A stretch of 63,022 nucleotides of DNA, the filler included, from Reticulomyxa filosa (Eukaryota > Protista > Foraminifera): assembly GCA_000512085.1 (NCBI GenBank). It is 13 parts of 13 records of this genome, joined end to end, with 100 filler letters (N's around TTAATTAATTAA, not from the genome) between each part and the next. Parts side by side here need not be neighbours in the genome. Positions count along the whole stretch, not along the records: positions 34,294 to 61,618 come from ASPP01019206.1; 12 more parts are not named here. The stretch is one strand, 5' to 3'. Made by a program: the position numbers and the translations under genes. A model generated the notes under the pieces. The model was not told where the DNA came from and searched no databases. It was given only the letters and a program-made list of their open reading frames with translations. Every line of letters starts with the position of its first letter. Position 1 is the first letter of the stretch. This document shows, in pieces, positions 43,684 through 61,571 of the stretch.

Positions 43684-46333
43684 ATGTGTGGTATTTGCGC
43701 AAAGATAGAGAATATTGTGCTTTCTGAGTTTTGTTTGCAAGCACTCCAATGCAAGCCTATGTCTGAAGCATATTGCAAATCCCAAGGCCGACATTTGCCA
43801 AGTTTGAGAGGGGCATTGTGTCCTCGAGGCCCAGATTCATTTGATAGTGTAACACTGAAAATTCCTTGTGCAAGCAAGGATTCGGTGGAAACAGAAAAGA
43901 GCAATGAACAAAAAGAGGACAAAATCTGTCACGAATGGACAGAACAGGACACAAACTTAGCAACGGTGACAATGGCAGGTGCAGTGTTGCACCTACGCGG
44001 TGAAAAGATCACCCCGCAACCCCTCAGCAATGAGGATGCAATTTTGGTATGGAATGGGGAAATTTTTGATGGAACATTGGCAATCGGTACTGAGGACAAT
44101 GACACTGCTGTGTTATTTAAGGAACTGTCGCGCTGTATCAATGACAGTTCGAATAGCAAAGATCAACATGCAGCGCAAAAGCGCTTCAGTGAAGTATGGA
44201 GTGGGATTGAAGGTCCGTTTGCACTTATTTATTGGGACAAAAGACATCAATGTTTATATTTTGGTCGCGATCGTCTGGGACGGCGGTCACTGCTTTACCA
44301 TTACGACCACACGCATCGCACATTTTATCTTTCGTCTGCCGCACACTCAGAAACGGAGTGTGTTCAATCCAAGGAAACCGAGTCACTTGCGTCACTCCAA
44401 TCTTCTTTGGCCTATCATTGGCAAGAACTTCCTTGTCTTGGAGTCTATCAATTGGAATGGAGTCCCTTGGGATGGAGTCTGAATTGCGACCTATGGCAAC
44501 AACACGAACCAAATGTGAGGAAAATGCCACTGAAATGGTTAAGGTGAACACGTTGGGGAGAGACACAGAAACAGATACTTATGAGTGAGTGTGACTGCGA
44601 TTGCTTTTAATTTGTGCATATGTGTGGATTGAACACTTTAATAAAAAAAAAAAAAAACATATATGTATATGTTTTTTTTAATAATCAAACAAGTAAGGTA
44701 AATCGCCCGTTAGAATTGAGTTACAACGAAGCTGTTGATCTTTTTATCAAAGTACTTAGTGACTCGGTGCAAAAAAGAGTGTGCAGTATAAGCCAGTCGT
44801 CGAAGCGATTGCGCCATCGATACTTGATGTCACAACCGGATGAATGGTGTCTTTGTGAAGGCAAAGAAGACCAACAGAAACGCTTCGGCGATTTGCCACG
44901 AGAGTCGTTATTGACGTCGTGGAGAGCGCAGCAAGAAACGGAGTCACAAGCGCGCGAAGCCTCCGTATGTATTTTGTACTCTGGAGGTATTGACTCGCAC
45001 GTGATTGCCGCTTTGTGTGACAAATTTGTGCCGAGCAATGAAACCATTGATTTAATCAACGTCAGCGTCGGCACAAACCCTTTGCAGGCTCCAGATAGGC
45101 TCACTGCAATCAATGGCTTTTTGGAGTTGTCCGAATGGAGTCCAACACGAAAATGGCGTTTGATCCAAGTCAATATCGATGAACTCCAAACTTTGAAAAA
45201 CATTCGAGTTGATTTTTTTTTTTTCCCCCTCTATTTTTTTTTTTTACAAGTAAAAGATAGAGACAAAAAAAAAAAAAAATTACATATATGTATGTACATA
45301 TTAAAATGAATACGTATGCTGGTATAATAGTTGCATATGTTGTCATTACTGTATCCTTGTAATACCATAATGGATTTCAATATTGGAAGCGTGCTATATT
45401 TTGGTGCTCGTGGGATTGGGTATGTATACGACAAAGAGTTAGAGTGGATTACTGACAGCAGCAAAATTCGGTATTCGAGCGTGGACAAGATGAATGCGGA
45501 AAAATACACGAGCGAGTTGGCGGATAACCGTAAGATAAGCGAGTTCGTGGAAGAGAAAATGCGGTCTGATGAGACATTACAAACCTTGATTGCTAACTCC
45601 AAAACTAATGAAGCCACTCGACAAGAAAAAATCACGGTGAACAAACTGACAAGGAAAGCCTATAAAAAGTACAAACAAGAATATCTCAATACGTTGAAAG
45701 AAAAATATGTGACAAAACAAAATTTGTCCAAAACTGAATTAAACGAATTGCAGCATCGAATAAAGCAAAACTCTCATTTGGTACACTCCAAACTTTTTTT
45801 GTTTTCAGTTACACTATACGTACAAATACACTCACAAAAAAAAAAAGTATATTTCTGCTGCGCGCGTGGTATTGCTCGGATTTGGCTCAGATGAACTTTT
45901 AGGTGGCTATGGTCGTCATCGGACGTCGTATCGATTGAAAGGAAAAGAAGGATTGATGGCTGAATTAAACAAAGACTGGAATCGTTTGTGGAAGCGCAAT
46001 CTAGGTAGAGACGATCGATTGATCAGTGATCACAGCAGAGAGGCTCGTCATCCATTCTTGGATGAAAGATTAATTGATTTGATCAAAAATAAATTACCAG
46101 TTCATTATTTATGTGATTTAAATGACAGTGAAGGAATTGGTGATAAAAAAATTTTGCGTGACAGTGCATATAAACTAGGCTTGAAAAAGACTTGTTCATT
46201 GGTCAAAAGAGCAATTCAATTTGGGACAAAAATTGCAGATAACAAAGTGGCAGGGTATGCACAAATCACTCCAGATCTCAAAATTGAAGATTTAATCAAT
46301 AATCAAGCTTTTGAAGAACAAAATACAAAATGA
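43684..46333 (+). CDS. ASNSD1: Asparagine synthetase domain-containing protein 1
   Basis: MCGI, RGPD, VLHLRG, WNGEIF, GRDRLGRRSLL, SGGIDS, GSDELLGGY.RH, RNLGRDDR, PFLDE, KRAIQFG. Confidence 0.93.
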
Positions 46334-46639
46334 CAAACCAAATCTTGACTAAAAAATTTCACAAACAGACTGGAAAAATGTATTATGAATAATGACATTA
46401 TCAAATTATTATTGCTTGTTGTGTTAAATTTTTTTACTAATTTTTTGTTAATCGGCAAAAATATCAAAAATAAAAAATTAATTATCTATTCAAACACAAA
46501 ACATAAATATTTAACGCTGATAATAACAGAATAAAAAAACTTAACATAATGATATCAACGTTGTCAAAATAGTTAGTAAATCTAAATTAATATGTAACAT
46601 TCGAAATATATAGTAAAATCATATACATTAAGATAAAAA

Positions 46640-47281
46640 AGAAAGGTTGAAGGTGGAGTAAATACTGATATATATAACGAAGTTTTATCTGACGAAATCG
46701 AAAGAGCGTCAATTGCTGCTTAGAAAATAAAGAGAATTTGATTTTCAGCAAGATAATTCAACATACCATAAATCGGAAAAAATTATTAAATGGTTAAAAC
46801 AAAAAAAAATGAAAAAAATGAAAAAAATGAATTTACTGTAAATTCACATGATTTAAATCCAATTGAAAATCTTTGGTGGATATTAAATAAAATGATTCAC
46901 AAAAAAGGACAATTTAATACTACTTAAGAAATTTGTAACTAATTCGAAACATAATGTGAAAAAATATAAACAAATATTTGTAAAACCTTAAGTTAAAAAA
47001 ACCAAATGATGTATAACAGTTGGTAAACTTAAATTAAATTTTAAAAAACAAATCTTATAATACTAAGTCACAACAAAAATTTTTTTTTAAGTAAATGAAA
47101 GATTAAAATTTTTGAAAAAATTAGAAAGACTTAATAAAAAACCAAAATGATATTTAAAAACTACACGATTCGTAGATATTTTTTTAAAAAAATTTTGATT
47201 AAATGTTGTTTTTTCATTTAGAAACAAAATAATATATATAAGTTGGCATTTTAAGTTTAAACTTTTTTTTTTATATTACTG
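46640..47281 (+). mobile_element. Tc1-like 3' remnant with terminal repeat
   Basis: VEGGVNTDIY.EVL...FQQDNSTYHKS...NSHDLNPIENLW; ends ...TACTG|TA. Confidence 0.88.
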
Positions 47282-48183
47282 TAAATATTTTTTTCGTTGC
47301 CAACAGTTGCATTTATAACTTTATCGAACTTTTTCTCACGATAATCCTTTTTAACTGTCGATTGTACTTCAATACTATTACGTTTTCAATTGGAAATGAA
47401 CGAAGAATGAAACAAAGATTTTTGTTCTATATGTCTATTTGTTAAATCGTTTACCAACGAAAAATCACAAACATAAAAAAAATACAATCAAATCATTATA
47501 ATTTTTAAAAATAGACATACTATACAAAGCACGAACATAACTTGGTGTTTCTTTTTGCAGTTTACACACTTATAGTCCAATCACTAGTCAACATTCTTTT
47601 GTCGAGTCTGCTTTTTCAAGTAACAAAGCTATTGTTGAGCTTTCATTATTTTGATCTTGTACATGCATACTCATTTTTGCTGTTTTAATATCTAGGCTAT
47701 CTTTGCTGAAGAAGATGACAAATCTGTTATATCAACTTTTTTTTAGAAGGGACTGCAGCTAGTACGTGCAAACGAGTACTACATTTTTGTTGATTTGAAG
47801 CATATATCCTTTTTAGATTTATTGCATTAATATGATATAATTCAACAAAACAAAAGCATTTGATTTAACATAATGTAATACAAATAGGATAACGAAAGCT
47901 TGGCTTGTATTAGTGCCTTTGAAACATATTACACTACAATCAAGATACGAATAAGATATCCCATACGTACTTTGGATTTATTCGAAAGTAAAAGAAAAAA
48001 AGATGCAAAATTGAACAAATAGGCAAAACAATGTATTTTATAAGTGCGAAAATTTTGAAAAACTGTGCTAGTCCCGTTTCGAGTTTTTTTAGAAAAATAA
48101 TTTTTTAAATTCTTGAGTATCTTTTTACAAAAGAATTACTTCGGTGACAAAAATTTTAGTAGGAAAAAAACTTTTGCAACTTT

Positions 48184-51521: not shown

Positions 51522-54500
51522 ATGCTCCCAAATAACAATAATATCATTGGAGTCCATTTAAATGTTGACACCCGCATTGTGGAATGGCTTATCAGGCCTC
51601 CATGTTTTGTGCACCAACATGAGGTCTTGGGGTTGTATGAGATGAATAATGAGAAAGTTCCTTTCGGAGCGCCCGTGCAAGGATTCATTGATGAGCTATT
51701 GATCAACGAAGGCGTGTTTGTGCCTTCCAAAACGGACTTGGTGGTGATAAACCCTTTGCCGCTTTCAAAGAGGGTCGAAGATGTCTGCATTGACAACAAT
51801 GAAATGGATGTGCCTGTAGTGATGGCAAGTGCATGTCCGCAGCCGTGCGAACATGCATTTGCACATGGACCACCTCTATCATCGTCTTCACCAATGGAAA
51901 TGGCAGTGCCAATATCACGACCCCTAAATGTATCACATGCGCCTCCGTTATTATTATCATCTCCTTCGTCGTCACTGTCATTTCCGATTCGGTTGACTCC
52001 GCCGACAATGGCAAAGACAACAATATCAACAACAGCAACAACAATAATAACAACAAATAATCTATCAACAACAGTGCCAGTGTTGATGCAGCCGCAGTTG
52101 TCATCGACCCCATCATCGTTTTCGCCAATGTTGATGGCGGCGAAAAATGAAATGTTGCCTCCCATGGATATGGAGCCATCCAACAAAAGCAATAGCAATA
52201 GCAATAGCAATAGCAATAACAATAACAATAACAATAGTAATAATAACAATAACAACGATAGCAAAGAAGATAATAATCATCGACACAAGCACAAGCGCAA
52301 ACATACAAAGAGACGCAATCAGTCCAGTCACTCGAAGTCCTCCTTGCCTTCTCGTTTCAAGACGTATACACAATCATCTTTGTCAAATTCGATGACTTCC
52401 ATTGGCAATGTCGATATCGGTGCGAGCGACCCTCATATTGTGACGATGAAGGACTACAACGATAGCAACAGTCGTGTTCATTCTCCGACGGCCATGAATA
52501 CTGCTTCTGTTACAACAGCAGCAGGCATTCCAAGCATGGCGGACAAAGATAAATTGGTGTTGGTGTTGGATATTGATCACACGTTGGTGCACAGCAGCTG
52601 TGATATGCGTTGTGAAAAGCTAATGACTGTGGGTTCGTTGAAGGATGACATTTACAAGATTGAAATCAAGTCCTTCAGCAATCACTTTGTAAAGCTGCGT
52701 CCGTACGTGCGGGAGTTTTTGCAGCGCGTGGCACCTTACTTCCATATCTGCGCATACACAATGGGCACGCGCAATTACACCAATAAAATTGTCGACATTT
52801 TGGATCCCACGCATACCATCTTCAGTCACAAGGTCCCGTTCATGTGTCGCACCAATGACTCTCTCAAACGAGACGACAAACTCTTGAACGATGTCAGTCC
52901 GTGCACCTCTTCTGCTTCTCTTGCTTGCAATGCCAATAATCACTTGCATTCGAATGCAAATGTCGCTGCTAATAATATAGCCACAAACGAAAATGCAAAC
53001 ACAAATGTCAATATCAACATAAACACAACTACAAATATAAATTCAAATTCAAATTCAAATTCAAATTCAAATTCAAATTCAAATTCAAATACAAATACAA
53101 ATGCAAATACAAATGCAAATGCAAATATAAGTGTGAATAATACTGTTGCTAATAACAATGCTCCCATCAAATCTTTGCACAAATTAATAGACGCTGCCAA
53201 ACGATTGAGTATAAATCGTTACAAAGACTGTCTTGACGACACTGGCCAAAATGCTTTTCTGCTTCCCCTTTCGTCAAATAACTCTGCTTCAGTTTTGTGT
53301 TTTACCTAAACAAACAACAGACAGACAAATCATATAAACAAAAAAAAACCAAAAAAAAAAAAAAAGAAAACAGAAAACAGAAAACAAAAATAAAAAAAAA
53401 TGTTCCCCACCATCTTTGTTTTGTTTTTGTTTTTGTGTGTTTGGACTGCGCACACAAAAAGTGACAACAACAAAATGGTGGATGATGAAATACAAAGGAA
53501 CGGACAGAAACCCATGGTTGGACGATTGAAGACGCGGTGATTGTGGATGACCGAATCAACAACTGGTGTTCGGATAGTGTTCCACATGTCCTTCGAATAC
53601 CACGCTACCAATTTTGGCCAATTGACGAGTTTGAGGATAAGCTGTTGGCGGAAGACGGAGAAATAGACTGTTCGAATGACGACAACAATAATAATAATAA
53701 TAATAATAATAAAAACAAAAATAATAATAACAATAATAACAATAATAATAATAATAATAATAACGCAAATGACAATAGCAATGAAAATGATGACAACAAG
53801 AACGAAGAGATGAACGAAAACATCGATCCAATGGACAGTGGAGACAGCCATCGGAAACGTCTTCGAAAGAACGACATCGAGAAACCAAAGAACAACGAGT
53901 TTTTGACAGACGAGCAATACTATCGTCGGCCGCGGTTTAATGAGAGAGATTGGGACAGCGAAAAGTGCGTGGAAAGACAGCAAAGTGACAATATACTGCT
54001 GACAGTCGCCAATGTACTAAAATGTGTGTACTTAGAGTACCAACGCATCAAACAAGAGAAGAACAACTCAAAGCATTTGTCCAACGATCCTCGCAAACGC
54101 AATGCGGTGCCTTCGTTACATTGTGGGGACATACTGTCACGTGTCAAGAAGACCACATTGCAAGGGAGTGTCTGCGTGTTCAGTGGCATCTTCCCCGTCG
54201 ATCGAGTTCCGATGGAACAGAACATATGGAAGTTGGCCCAAGAGTTTGGAGCCACTTGCACCGCGCAATATTCGCCCGACGTAGTCACTCACGTCATCGC
54301 TGCCGTGCGAGGCACGACAAAGGTGCAGCAGTCCAAAAAAGACCGCGTTTGGTGCGAACATGTCAATTGGCTGTTCGAATCGGTGTTCCATTTCCAGCGC
54401 TGCGACGAACTCAAGTATTGGTTTGGTCATAAAAATGCCTCCAAACCTGTGGTTTGTTCTACATCTATTACCAATCTTCGATTCACACACAATGTATTGT

Positions 54501-55712
54501 ATTGTATTGTATTGTATTGCACACACATATATGTACATATATATATGTATATCTTCTTCATCATTTGCAAACTCTTTCTTTTTTGTAGTTTTGTTGGCTT
54601 GTGCTTGTATGTTTGGCGAAAAACAGAGCCTGCTCCATAAAGACGTAGTAACGACGGAAAAATTGCTGGAAAAACTGAACAATCCCAAACATCACTCGTT
54701 TGTGGTAACCAAAGCTCCAAAAGTGGAAGAGGTAAGAGAAGTGGCTCCATTAGGGGGAAGGCCAACCAATGACAGCAGAGACAAACACAGTGTTGTGTCG
54801 CCAAGTCGAGGGGGGTCCACACGCAAAACGAAAAGTAAAGGCAAAACCAAAAGCAAGACTAAATCAAAGAGCAAACAATCGAAGCCTCCCAATGCTTTGA
54901 ATGCTTCGAATGCTTCGAATACTTCTAATGCTTCGAATGTTTCATTGCCTCTATCTTTGCCTGGTTCGCAAGGGGATCCTCCCTCTTCTTCTTCTTCTTC
55001 TTCTTCTTCGTCCTCCTCCACGTGCTCCAATCCTAGCAACAACAGCAATGTCGTCACAATCGACACTATTCGCAAAGAATTAATCGCCTATTTGAAAGAA
55101 AAGTTCTTCACTCCTTTGGATATTGTGAAGAAGCATTTATTCACGAAGTTCGGGGAACACTTGGTTCTTCAATTGTGCGATATCAATGACGTGAAGGCCT
55201 TTTTGAATCAAATGGGTAAAAGTGATTTCGTGTGCATTGATCCTGGTAACGAACCGTGTTTGATTGGGCTTACCAAAGTCTATCTCGGTCAAGATTTTGC
55301 TTCCACCGATACAAATTCAAACTCCAACACTAATTCCAATTCCAATTCCAATTCTAATTCTAATTCTAATTCTAGTCCCAGTTCTAATTCATTGGCTGAC
55401 GAAGCACATTCCAATAACACTGCCTCGAGCAATCCCTTGCAGTCGGCTGCAGACGATGTGGATATGAAAAAGCTGGATGTCGTAATGGAAAAGATAGCAG
55501 CTCCAAGGAGGGACCCTGTCAAGCGTGCAAAAGCCAAAACCATCGAATCAAAACGGGTTGTTGTCAAAAACGTTAACATTCCTGAACCTGTTTTGTTTCA
55601 AGATCTTTGGGACAATCAACAACCTCACCTCGACAAAAGCAAACTTGAAATCGAACATCGTGACCATTGTTCACAAATGTTTCGTAACGTTTCATTCTTT
55701 TTCTTCTCCCTT

Positions 55713-55750
<38 letters not shown>

Positions 55751-56815
55751 GTTAATGGAAGATAATGACATCCGTTTGAGACCTATGCAAGCAAAAGTAC
55801 GCAGAACAAACCTTCAAAGACCACGTGAAATTCATAACGATTTACCCATTGAATGCACTAGCCAATGGCGCGAATCTATATTGCCACTGCCAAGACCTAT
55901 AATTTATTCTGATAATGCCAACATAATTAATCAACAAGCCACTCTGATACCTGTTATGTGGTTGCTATTTTCATTGCTTTGTGTTTTTGCATTACATTAC
56001 TTTATCTTCGCGTTGCATCATGAGATCAACTCTTGTATTGTTTGTTTCCTCCCCTCTCTTCCAACAGTCGGCAATGCCGGATCCCTTGGGTAATCAACAT
56101 TTGCTAAACAGAGATGAAGACACGAGAAATGGTCCCCATTTTACAAGAAACAATCCGACATTCAATTTGGAAAGATCTGCTTGCGCAAACGAAACAAATC
56201 AAATAATTTTGCACACACCGATTGGACAACCGCACAATTTTGAACAAAGGAACTTTAATGATTCTCATAACTTCGAATATGTTTCTGGTTCTTCACGGCG
56301 TTCTCGCTCTCCTATGCACAGGCAACGAATTGAAAGGCATTCTAATTATACCTTTAAATCACGATCTCGTTCAAGACATCGGAGTCACCGACGAGAAAGC
56401 AAAAGCCCAGACAAAGACCGATTCAAAGAAAGAGAACGAGAGCGAGAACGAGAACGAGAACGAAAAAGAGAAAAAGAAAGAGATCGAGGAAGAGACTCTG
56501 CGAGACACACTGACTACAAACGAAACACGCACAAGAATGACTCCAAACGTAATAGTGGCTACAAACATGAGCACAGTGATTTAAATAGAAAGGAGAGTAA
56601 GTCAAAAGATAGTAACAAGTATCGGAAAGGACATGAAGAAGAAAAAGAAGATGATTTGTTTGGTTTACTTCTCAAGTTTGTTCATTTCTTATTTTTCTCT
56701 CCTCTTACACACACTCAGTAATATTGTCACTTGTGTTTATCAGAGAACATGTGAAAGATCAAAGACATCAAAGTTACGACAAACGGTAAATGCAGAGCCT
56801 GCTGACTTGGTGTGA
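51522..56815 (+). CDS. FCP1: RNA polymerase II CTD phosphatase FCP1 (FCPH + BRCT) with Asn-rich inserts and RS/RE tail; 3' end approximate
   Basis: LVLDIDHTLVH (DxDxT), VKLRPY.REFL, YTMGTRNY, IVDDR..W, BRCT VFSGIFP...VTHVIA...WL.ES. Confidence 0.9.
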
Positions 56816-57330: not shown

Positions 57331-58768
57331 TTAAGATTTCTCAGTGAGAACACTTTGTTTAATATCTTCGATTATTTTTGCCCCTCCAATTTTTCTAATT
57401 TCATCAGCAACGGTTACTCCTAACTGTCTTGCACACTTTACATTTTTTTCAGTGTCCTCTTTTACATTAGAAAGTTCAGTGCATTCGTAGTGTGACTTTG
57501 CTTCGGCCCCATCCTGTGTCAATACGACAGCGTAGAGGCTTAAAAGCACCTTCCCAGTGTTACCTAGTTTTGGCCAACATAAAAAAAGAGAAGACAAACG
57601 GGATGCAATAGTAGTTCAAAAAAACATGAAAAGAATTATAATAACTTTGTTGTGGAAGCAAAGAGAAGCATGCTTGACACTTTCGTAGATCCGCCTTGTT
57701 TCGCATTTTGCAAGTTTTACATTGCTGCAGTACTATGACATGATCCAAATATGTATATCACGTTAAAGAATGATACGCTGACAGCCTTTTATCTCGTTGA
57801 GACTTTAAACATTGAAAAAAAAAAAAGACCATTTGCTTAACGATAAGTCCGAACTGCTACAGGTACCTTGCACCCACCCTCCAATTCTCTAAGCAGAGAT
57901 CTCTCAGCTTCACATAACAACTGTGTATAAATATCATTCAGTTGTGAAAAACGTGACTGCAGATTAGCATCATGTGATTGTTCCGAAGAATTGATAGTCC
58001 ATTTGGAAGAACGACACACGAGAGCCAAAGCTCCCTGTCCAACACAATAAGGAAATTGGATATCGCTTAGTTTTGTTACACACAAATCCTTGACGTTTTC
58101 ATTGTTTCGCTTCGTCCATTCCAATCGATCAACGCCCACATATGCCAACATAATTGCATCAAACAACTGTTCCTTCAACAACTTATTCAAGCGTGTTCCC
58201 AAATTGCCTCGAATTTCTTCAATGGAATATATATCATCAACGTTTTCTGCTTGTGGATGTTGTGCTCGGAAAAAGCGTCTCAATAATGCCTTCCTGCGCA
58301 AAGAGGATGTTCCAATTTTCGAGCCCTTTTTTTTTTTTTTTTTTGAAGTCATAAAAAAAAAAAGTACAAACAACCGGGAAAACTAACATGAGGCAGCTGT
58401 GACAACGTTGTGACATTTTTATGTTTTGCTTGATCGATTAGAATGCAATCATTTGGTGCTTCACGTTTTAAATAACAGATTATTTCCATTCTTGAGTCTA
58501 GTACAGTTGGAAGATCTTTTACACAGTGCACTGCACAATCAACTTGACGGTTGAGTAGAATGTCATCCAGTTCTTTTGTGAATACACCCTTGTCACTGAA
58601 TTTGGATAGTGGAAGCTCTGTATTTTTATCGCCCTGCGTCTTTCGTGATATTAGCTCAAATGTTATGGAGGGAAACTTTTCTTGCAGAAGTTTTTGTGCG
58701 TGCCTCGCTTGCCACATTGCCAAAGGTGATTCTCTTGTTCCAATCTTTATTATTTCTACAGAAGTCAT
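57331..58768 (-). CDS. HMBS: Porphobilinogen deaminase (hydroxymethylbilane synthase) with an inserted zinc-finger exon
   Basis: IGTRESPLAMWQA, KGVFTKEL, AVHCVKDLP, GTSSLRR, IRGN..TRL.KL, GQGAL, AERSLLRELEGGCKVP; introns 58326-58387, 57733-57841, 57564-57645. Confidence 0.95.
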
Positions 58769-59405: not shown

Positions 59406-61571
59406 ATGTTGTGCAGAGCAAATAATAATCATTGTCAGCAATTAGACAGCACAATGTCCGGCTGCAATGTGGATGGCAAAAAGGATGCAAGATACAATGC
59501 CAGACTTCCGTTGCATGAGTTGTCTAATACCAAACATGCATTAAACATGACAACACAGAGTGGGGCTGTAAAAGCGACCAACTTGGAAGGGATGCGCAAA
59601 AAAAAGGCACTCATTTCAGAAAATGACAAAGGGAGCACTTTCCAGCACTGGAAGCTATCCAAATACAAGACTACGAGCAAAAGTGATGACTTGTTACGAA
59701 AAAGTCAGCCGCAGTCGATCATTGGAACTCACACGCAAACTGAAAAAGCAACAAGTTGTGCCTTGTCTCACACGAACAATGAAGCATTTATAACCCAAAA
59801 CAAGGCAATGCAAAAACTGGCAGCTGCCAAAGAAAAGTTGCACTATCGCAACTTTTTGAGTGATAAAGAGTCAGTTGGTCTTTGTACACATATGTATACG
59901 TTGTTTTGTTTTGTTTGTTTTGTTCTTTTTTAATTTGAATGAACCTTTGGCCAAATGAAATAAATATTGTATAAATAAATAAAATAAATACATGCATATA
60001 TATGTACACCTTCAAAGAAACACGCAAAGCAGCAGAACAAAGAAATCGGGTTGGTCCCAGAATGTCTTGACAAGTGGCTCGAATGAAGATGATAGCATTG
60101 TCAAGACAAGAGCGGATATCTGCGCTTCGAAACTGGACCGCATTGACAATTATGAGTATCGTCTACAGAACAAGCGTAATCGGGCCACCGATGCCTCGAC
60201 GGACAATGATCACAAGGTTGGCAGAAATGAGATTGGTTTGAACGGGACATTGACAAGTGGCATGAATGTTCACTGTGCAAGTATCGAAGACAAAAACGGA
60301 GACAAGGAGGATGAGGAGACCAGGAACACGCACAAAAACGCCGACATCGATGCGTTGTCGATCAATGAGGAAAAAACTCTCTGCGATATTCTCGGACAGA
60401 CAGTGGAGACAAAAGGGCATGACTGTGAGAGTCTAATAAACAAGAACCATGACAAGGACAATGAACAATTAACAAGGATTAAAAAAAAAGAAAAAGAAGA
60501 AGGAGAATGTTTGTTGACCGGTTTGGAGATTTCAAAAGAAGAGAAAAGATTTGGGCCAGAAGTACAGATGAAGAGATCAAGTGCCGAAAACGCTTTCAAT
60601 GCTGACGAAGCAAAAAATCGCGATTTGTATTCTGTGTTGAATACAGATATTGGTGTGAATCAGCGCGGAGTGGTGGATGATGTCCAAGTGCAAAGAGATA
60701 AAAGGGATTCATTGCCGTTTGATTTAATGTCTGCAAATTGGAATGTTTGTGATCCTGCACTAAAATATAAAGTATATGGTGGCAGTGATGACGATACTTG
60801 GGCCAAATACCCAATTGATCAGGTGCAACGAGATAACGAAACCAAACCTAATGTCCCAGAACTTAGTTTGTTGAGTGACTTTACCCTCAACAGTCATTCC
60901 AATCTTGGCGATAGCAACGGGTCGAATGTGTTCCGAAAGAGTGCGGACAAGTCACTGCACGTTTTTCCTAGCAACGAAAAAAGAACAGAACAAAAACATT
61001 GGAAATTGTCAGATGTACAACCTGTGCCCTTATCTGAGTGCGTTTGCAGCAACAATGGCCAAAAACAGAGAGAAAAAAAAAACAAACAAACAATAAAGAA
61101 ATTATTATTATTTTTTTTTTTTTTTTGGTGTTTCATATAAAAATACGCATACACTACTTTTGTAATAAATTGGTTTAAAAAAAAAAAAATAGGAAAGAAA
61201 AGGGAACACATGAACAGCGAATGTCGAAAATTGGGAAAGTGGCTTCCGGAAATGACGTGAACAATAGCATTGGTGACTCCAAAGTCGATGCGATTTGCAA
61301 GACATTGCAACACAATCAAATACGACAGCCTCATCCGCAGCTGCAACCGCAATCACAGCAGTGTGATAGCGCTCCAAAAGAAAGATGGAAATTATCAGAT
61401 TTTGACATTGGTCCTTCCTTGGGTCGGGGGAAGTTTGGCAATGTTTATTTGGCAAGAGAGAAGCAATCCAAATTTACGTGTGCATTAAAAGTGTTGTATA
61501 AAAAACAATTGCAACAAGCTGAAGTTGAACATCAATTAAAAAGAGAAATTGAAATCCAAGCGCACTTGAGG
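59406..61571 (+). CDS. Aurora kinase with very long N-terminal extension (3' truncated by gap)
   Basis: [36 protein letters not shown]....[16 protein letters not shown]; upstream ORFs join in phase via GT-AG introns. Confidence 0.9.

Follow-up and report, generated by a model that had tools for sequence, protein, structure and literature searches.

The porphobilinogen deaminase (HMBS) gene of Reticulomyxa filosa contains a short exon which, in our reading, inserts a RanBP2/NZF-like Cys4 module into the third domain of the enzyme. We put the probability at roughly 0.8 that HMBS truly uses this segment (57732-57646) as a coding exon, that the insert has a single foraminiferal origin and that it is likely to be spliced constitutively. 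Coordinates are those of the window, i.e., the whole stretch of DNA that was analysed, with a length of 63,022 nucleotides. A preliminary description of this DNA had proposed that the segment is a genuine module of the domain-3 hairpin, and this is borne out by 11 relatives which carry an insert at the same site. It had also stated that no such fusion was known. Full-text searches of the literature, on HMBS or porphobilinogen deaminase in connection with an insertion, a zinc finger or foraminifera and on heme biosynthesis in Reticulomyxa, likewise yielded no description of the insert, and a zinc-finger insert in foraminiferal HMBS appears to be undescribed so far.

The gene is composed of four exons and runs along the minus strand from 58768 to 57331 (Table 1). 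Pfam searches were carried out exon by exon and the fold and structure tests on database relatives, whilst the joined R. filosa protein was used for the frame check, the MAFFT alignment and the tree. Exon 2 matches both PF01379 (71.2 bits; the cut-off for this family is 22.1 bits) and PF03900 (34.2 bits), and is 100% identical to residues 128-288 of the public protein ETO15352.1 (P0001); as this second domain is interrupted by the insert, the PF03900 match is divided between exon 2 and the last exon. The last exon aligns to the C-termini of the relatives, for example over LYAVVLTQDG and GAKIIEDIKQ. The invariant catalytic and cofactor residues of HMBS are all held by the R. filosa translation, including the GGC cofactor cysteine within EGGCKVP (C276, invariant in alignment A1).

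Table 1. Features of the R. filosa HMBS gene, in order of transcription (positions in the window).
Feature	Position	Strand	GC	Description
Exon 1	58388..58768	(-)		381 nt, 127 codons; ATG 58768-58766; PF01379 125.2 bits; residues 1-127 of ETO15352.1 (P0001)
Intron 1	58326..58387	(-)	0.226	62 nt, GTTAGT...AAAG; removal restores the frame over ...LPH/GSKIGTSSLRR (/ marks the junction); agrees with P0001
Exon 2	57842..58325	(-)	0.413	484 nt; cofactor motif EGGCKVPVAVRTY at its end, followed by 1 nt (phase 1), ...ACT TAT C/GTTAAG
Intron 2	57733..57841	(-)	0.312	109 nt, GTTAAG...CATAG; in-frame TAA at 57839-57837
Zinc-finger exon	57646..57732	(-)	0.414	87 nt, phase 1/1; matches the inserts of 11 relatives column by column in the alignment
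Cys4 core	57668..57721	(-)		Cys1 57721-57719, Cys2 57712-57710, Asn 57700-57698, Cys3 57679-57677, Cys4 57670-57668
Intron 3	57564..57645	(-)	0.293	82 nt, GTTATT...AACTAG
Last exon	57331..57563	(-)		233 nt, rest of domain 3; stop TAA 57333-57331; PF03900 16.8 bits on this exon alone

Within the 278-nt interval between exon 2 and the last exon only one AG/GT pair delimits an exon that encodes the complete finger in frame. The exon so defined is entered and left in phase 1 and its peptide reads C-x2-C-x3-N-x6-C-x-A-C, with Gln two residues before Cys1; the segment described beforehand, 87 nt with AG/GT ends and phase 1 on either side, situated after the cofactor exon and before the last exon and encoding this peptide, was thus confirmed in every detail. 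Its effect on the protein is to replace one codon at the tip of the domain-3 hairpin with a module of ~29 residues. When the exons were joined with the finger included, an open frame of 394 aa resulted; when it was skipped the frame also stayed open, giving 365 aa with RTY-R-NTGK across the junction and a normal hairpin, and the earlier statement that skipping restores the canonical length is therefore correct. All three donor sites of the gene begin with GTTA (GTTAGT, GTTAAG and GTTATT), and a likely GTTAAG donor was also seen after the first ORF of a neighbouring glutamine-amidotransferase-like gene (~44535, plus strand); this may be a 5' splice-site flavour typical of the species. Elsewhere in the window, ORFs of 577 aa (54360-56093) and 382 aa (59992-61140), both on the plus strand, gave no Pfam match, an ORF of 595 aa (51522-53309) contains a NIF/CTD-phosphatase-like domain, and a very AT-rich intergenic kilobase (GC 0.20) lies at 46294-47293.

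The public gene model, ETO15352.1 (X6MPJ9_RETFI, porphobilinogen deaminase of R. filosa; 57837-58768, minus strand), is 289 aa long and ends in ...RTYR; it was the only 100% match to exon 2 in the full HMMER scan. It is truncated because the model reads from exon 2 straight into intron 2, stopping at the TAA at 57839-57837, and it is without the finger exon and the last exon, that is, 105 C-terminal residues which make up most of domain 3. No transcript-derived full-length HMBS of R. filosa was present among the database protein matches. The gene structure given here corrects this public model.

As the GenBank model omits the finger exon, the segment might be thought of as a dead pseudo-exon, or a chance reading frame, lying in a single intron of 278 nt, in which case the mRNA would join 57842 to 57563 and R. 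filosa would make no finger. However, the same model is also without the indispensable last exon and is therefore simply truncated. In addition, none of the four cysteines, the Asn or the Ala of the core has been lost, the exon has an open frame and a splice site at either end, and its GC content is that of an exon and not of the introns (Table 1). These features have been retained in spite of the divergence of R. filosa, which exceeds that of any other member of the finger clade (end branch of 1.25 changes per column). A pseudo-exon is thus exceedingly improbable. The strict pattern C-x2-C-x3-N-x6-C-x2-C was found once in the six frames of the 27,325-base piece that contains the gene, as against 0 in 300 Markov shuffles, and the DNA of the finger core occurs once in the window. 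Both a chance origin of the motif and a repeat or mobile element residing in an intron were ruled out by this uniqueness of the core in the window taken together with its conservation across species.

The finger was found at the same hairpin, following GGCK(V/I)PI, in 11 other HMBS proteins; P0002-P0005 were the next-best matches to exon 2, P0151-P0156 were found with P0002, and P0263 was a member of a cluster. Two of these come from EukProt protein sets, P0152 from Nonionella stella and P0154 from Bolivina argentea, which we take to be rotaliid foraminifera, and the finger-bearing relatives are mostly environmental sequences. The other ~250 of the ~260 HMBS examined have no finger at the beta1-beta2 hairpin of domain 3. 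The search for further carriers was extended in several ways: a region search returned known finger-bearing proteins only, a scan of JGI metagenomes with a four-sequence finger profile gave no confirmed locus, the same scan with exon 2 gave three distant HMBS only, all of them finger-less, and a search of the ESM Atlas with the finger part returned matches in an HMBS context only (<0.85), a result that says nothing either way about further carriers.

Conservation of the four cysteines in relatives had been put forward beforehand as a check on the segment, and in the 12-sequence alignment all four are kept in 12 of 12, as is the Ala before Cys4. The Asn is present in 11 of the 12. Following Cys2, position +2 is Leu or Met in every sequence and position +3 is Trp in ten. 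R. filosa and eight of the relatives have the full C-x2-C-x3-N-x6-C-x2-C spacing, and in P0003 and P0005 the second loop of the finger has 11 residues and not 6.

Several of the relatives show peculiarities of their own. In the finger of B. argentea (P0154) the spacing is kept and Cys stands in for the Asn (LWCC), giving six cysteines. In P0263 (L001:3001-4401) and P0155 the finger is followed directly by a low-complexity linker of ~70 residues, in which Asn, Gly, Asp and Val abound, and only then by strand 2 of domain 3; much longer inserts are thus tolerated by this hairpin. P0003, from a TARA metagenome scaffold (L004:63-2420), is a single ORF of 785 aa which continues into a C-terminal extension of ~390 residues with faint ankyrin-repeat matches and which may stem from a fusion or from a read-through in gene calling. 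The EukProt set of N. stella also includes a second, finger-less HMBS (P0010), 37% identical to P0002, which may be a paralogue or may stem from prey, kleptoplast donors or contaminants.

A maximum-likelihood tree was computed from 62 HMBS, with the columns of the finger removed and 11 finger-bearing rows included. All finger-bearing rows fell into one clade (SH-aLRT 98), in which R. filosa is sister to the rest. The enclosing clade (SH-aLRT 99) includes the HMBS of three other Rhizaria, Amorphochlora amoebiformis, Spongospora subterranea and Plasmodiophora brassicae, from which the insert is absent, the hairpin being of the ordinary short kind; P0006 and P0157 form a finger-less sister pair. 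The simplest reading of this distribution is a single gain of the finger within or at the base of the Foraminifera, so that the insert would have arisen once in the foraminiferal HMBS lineage and been retained since.

The preliminary description attributed the insert to exon shuffling. This is plausible because a symmetric 1-1 exon delimits the module exactly, although that mode of origin is a conclusion drawn from the gene structure and not a direct demonstration. As in known cases of shuffling of symmetric 1-1 exons, the R. filosa module is a single exon of 87 nt between phase-1 introns, and deletion of this exon restores the normal hairpin; unlike such cases, no donor gene was found and the HMBS genes of the marine relatives examined are intronless. 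Insertion of a symmetric exon would have supplied the module, with the introns later lost in the marine lineages, and such a loss would be more economical than two precise gains because R. filosa branches first. The HMBS gene of Plasmodiophora is intronless. The only other hairpin intron seen is in a distant finger-less eukaryotic HMBS (P0025; L006:1180-1295, VFQP010021216.1), in which an intron of ~106 nt (GTACGT...TAG) lies at the same hairpin codon as intron 2 of R. filosa, though its phase is 2; part of this intron has been translated in the database protein P0025, much as happened in the R. filosa model.

It had further been suggested that the insert is switched by alternative splicing. 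Being symmetric (phase 1/1) and divisible by three, the 87-nt exon has the makings of a regulated cassette, and if it were skipped the 365-aa frame would stay open and the hairpin would have its canonical length, such that R. filosa could make HMBS with and without the finger and thereby switch an interaction or sensing function. Against this, the whole of HMBS together with the finger is one uninterrupted ORF in P0263 (L001), P0151 (L003) and P0003 (L004), all on metagenome scaffolds, and in P0002 on a Logan contig (L005), in each case amid closely spaced neighbouring genes. Because it is part of a single ORF the finger is constitutive in these four relatives, where skipping is impossible and the finger-bearing form is the working enzyme. 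Neither was a finger-less isoform found among the members read of the finger-bearing 90% clusters, each of which contains one or two sequences. Regulated exon skipping is, moreover, uncommon in unicellular eukaryotes. The contigs L003 and L005 are gene-dense, with spacers of ~20-170 bp, alternating strands and an intronless HMBS, whereas the R. filosa gene has introns.

Intron length points in the same direction. The mean intron length given for R. filosa in Table 1 of PMC13746701, which cites Glöckner et al. 2014, is 87 nt; measured against that tabulated value, the two introns which flank the finger exon (109 and 82 nt) match the species, whereas the 278-nt intron produced by skipping would be unusual. 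A regulated cassette exon is thus quite improbable, and the suggested splicing switch is not supported in view of single-ORF fingers in four relatives, intron sizes which, on the tabulated mean, fit inclusion, and cluster members of which none is a skipped isoform. Since the finger is hard-wired into the intronless ORFs of the relatives, inclusion of the exon in R. filosa is most likely constitutive as well, a reading drawn from sequence comparison which we hold with good confidence.

The type of finger is less straightforward. With the 28-aa translation of the exon, PF00641 (Zn_ribbon_RanBP) gave an E-value of 1.3e-4 and 21.6 bits, which is under the gathering score of 27, and no PF00641 match was obtained with the inserts of eight relatives. 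The conserved Trp that lies two residues before Cys1 is absent; its place is taken by Gln in R. filosa, confirming the substitution described earlier, and by Ser, Arg, Phe, Ile, Val or Asn in the relatives. A profile of the 12 fingers compared with all PDB sequences found Nup153 fingers to be the best matches (E 0.03-0.07), accounting for eight of the 14 matches listed, and there were also weak matches to ribosomal L40e-type ribbons. An AF2 model of the finger, built from the finger alignment, had a pLDDT of 80.6. Its top Foldseek matches were NZF1 of TRABID and the fingers of Nup153 and RanBP2, with an rmsd of 0.7-0.9 Å over 24-25 residues. The best matches comprised TRABID NZF1, Nup153 ZnF1-4, RanBP2 ZnF2-8, MDM2, HOIL-1L, HOIP, ZRANB2 and YAF2/RYBP, and for most of these the rmsd was 0.7-0.9 Å over 23-25 residues and the TM-score by target up to 0.84; the E-values were ~1 because the domain is so short. 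These figures should be considered with some caution, as the AF2 model may merely reproduce a memorised fold for such a spacing.

Fingers of this type bear signatures of their ligands: ubiquitin-binding NZF fingers have T-F directly after Cys2 together with a hydrophobic residue between Cys3 and Cys4, Ran-binding fingers have L-V after Cys2, and RNA-binding fingers have N-F/W-x-R-R. The ubiquitin signature is unmatched by the HMBS inserts, which have K-M after Cys2 in R. filosa and mostly G/N-L in the relatives, with Q-A between Cys3 and Cys4. When the 12-finger alignment was set against the published Ran and RNA motifs, these were likewise unmatched.

Taken beside the RanBP2/NZF fingers of Nup153, RanBP2/Nup358, TRABID, Npl4, ZRANB2 and MDM2, the HMBS insert is alike in its spacing, its Asn and the Ala before Cys4, and its predicted fold may be similar. 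In contrast to them, it is without the Trp at -2 from Cys1 and stays below the Pfam gathering score, it has Leu/Met-Trp before the Asn in place of T-F or L-V directly after Cys2, and it is a single finger in the loop of an enzyme and not an array or terminal module of a nuclear-pore, ubiquitin or RNA protein. The earlier identification as a RanBP2/NZF finger thus stands as regards the spacing and is in keeping with the predicted fold; it does not stand as regards the score (21.6 against 27 bits) and the missing Trp.

A Cys4 knuckle or ribbon could instead have evolved independently and converged on the RanBP2/NZF spacing, serving as a ligand-free structural staple for a lengthened hairpin. The sub-threshold PF00641 score in R. 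filosa and its absence from the eight relatives, the loss of the Trp before Cys1, the lack of any of the T-F, L-V or N-F/W-x-R-R motifs and the additional matches to L40e-type ribbons would all agree with convergence. What speaks against it is that the exact spacing comes with a conserved Asn and with Ala in front of Cys4, both of them typical of the RanBP2 consensus, that Nup153 fingers predominate among the listed sequence matches of known structure, and that the structural matches, at sub-angstrom rmsd, are mainly to fingers of NZF, Nup153 and RanBP2. Convergence is a possibility, albeit on the unlikely side; the insert looks like, and probably descends from, a zinc ribbon of the RanBP2/NZF type and may be classed as a putative member of the family.

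The surroundings of the finger were examined in an AF2 model of the relative P0002, which was built from a 146-sequence alignment and had a pLDDT of 95.1, with 83-98 for the blocks of the insert. The model has the three-domain fold of HMBS (Z 40.6 and an rmsd of 1.6 Å over 315 residues to human 7ccy_C), and the finger is flanked by long strands at 280-289 and 320-332. The hairpin concerned is the first of domain 3, and the module occupies its tip, immediately past the strand that follows the cofactor cysteine. From published HMBS structures we presume this tip to lie at the end of domain 3 and remote from the catalytic cleft; the finger would then be a knob on an extended two-stranded stalk, far from the active site, and the catalytic apparatus would be left untouched by the insert. 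In common with HMBS/HemC in general (EC 2.5.1.61; human 7CCY, Escherichia coli 1PDA), the finger-bearing enzymes have the three-domain fold, as modelled for P0002, and, in R. filosa, the PF01379 and PF03900 domains, the GGC cofactor cysteine and the invariant Arg, Asp and Gln, and they differ in that non-foraminiferal HMBS, among the ~260 examined, have no finger at the beta1-beta2 hairpin of domain 3. An insert specific to human HMBS is known, but it is located elsewhere in domain 3.

We do not think that the finger is a catalytic element, nor one that is switched by splicing, and the idea put forward in the preliminary description that it senses metal or redox state received no support. Going by the models, it would be a non-catalytic, Zn-stabilised surface knob, most likely a docking site for a partner, a purely structural role being the main rival. 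That such a Zn-stabilised surface module docks a protein partner is suggested with low confidence; the docking face would be the one after Cys2, where a conserved Leu or Met is followed by Trp in ten of the 12 sequences, the same face with which fingers of the NZF and Nup153 kind bind ubiquitin or Ran. A bolder version would have a functional ligand-binding finger of the RanBP2/NZF type which tethers or regulates HMBS through ubiquitin, Ran-GDP, RNA or uroporphyrinogen-III synthase, acquired by exon shuffling and with the original 1-1 exon still kept by R. filosa. As a whole this is unlikely, although, if true, it would provide a molecular synapomorphy at the level of the phylum and a rare documented instance in which exon shuffling has added a module to a protist enzyme of core metabolism.

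HMBS ranks among the most conserved enzymes of tetrapyrrole synthesis, and its foraminiferal insert is a conserved domain insertion that is restricted to one lineage. Environmental data could be searched for foraminiferal HMBS with the insert as a sequence marker, and the structure of the R. filosa gene offers a tidy candidate case for the insertion of a module as a symmetric exon. The insert also raises a biochemical question, namely whether a zinc finger on a cytosolic heme enzyme serves stability, channelling, turnover or localisation.
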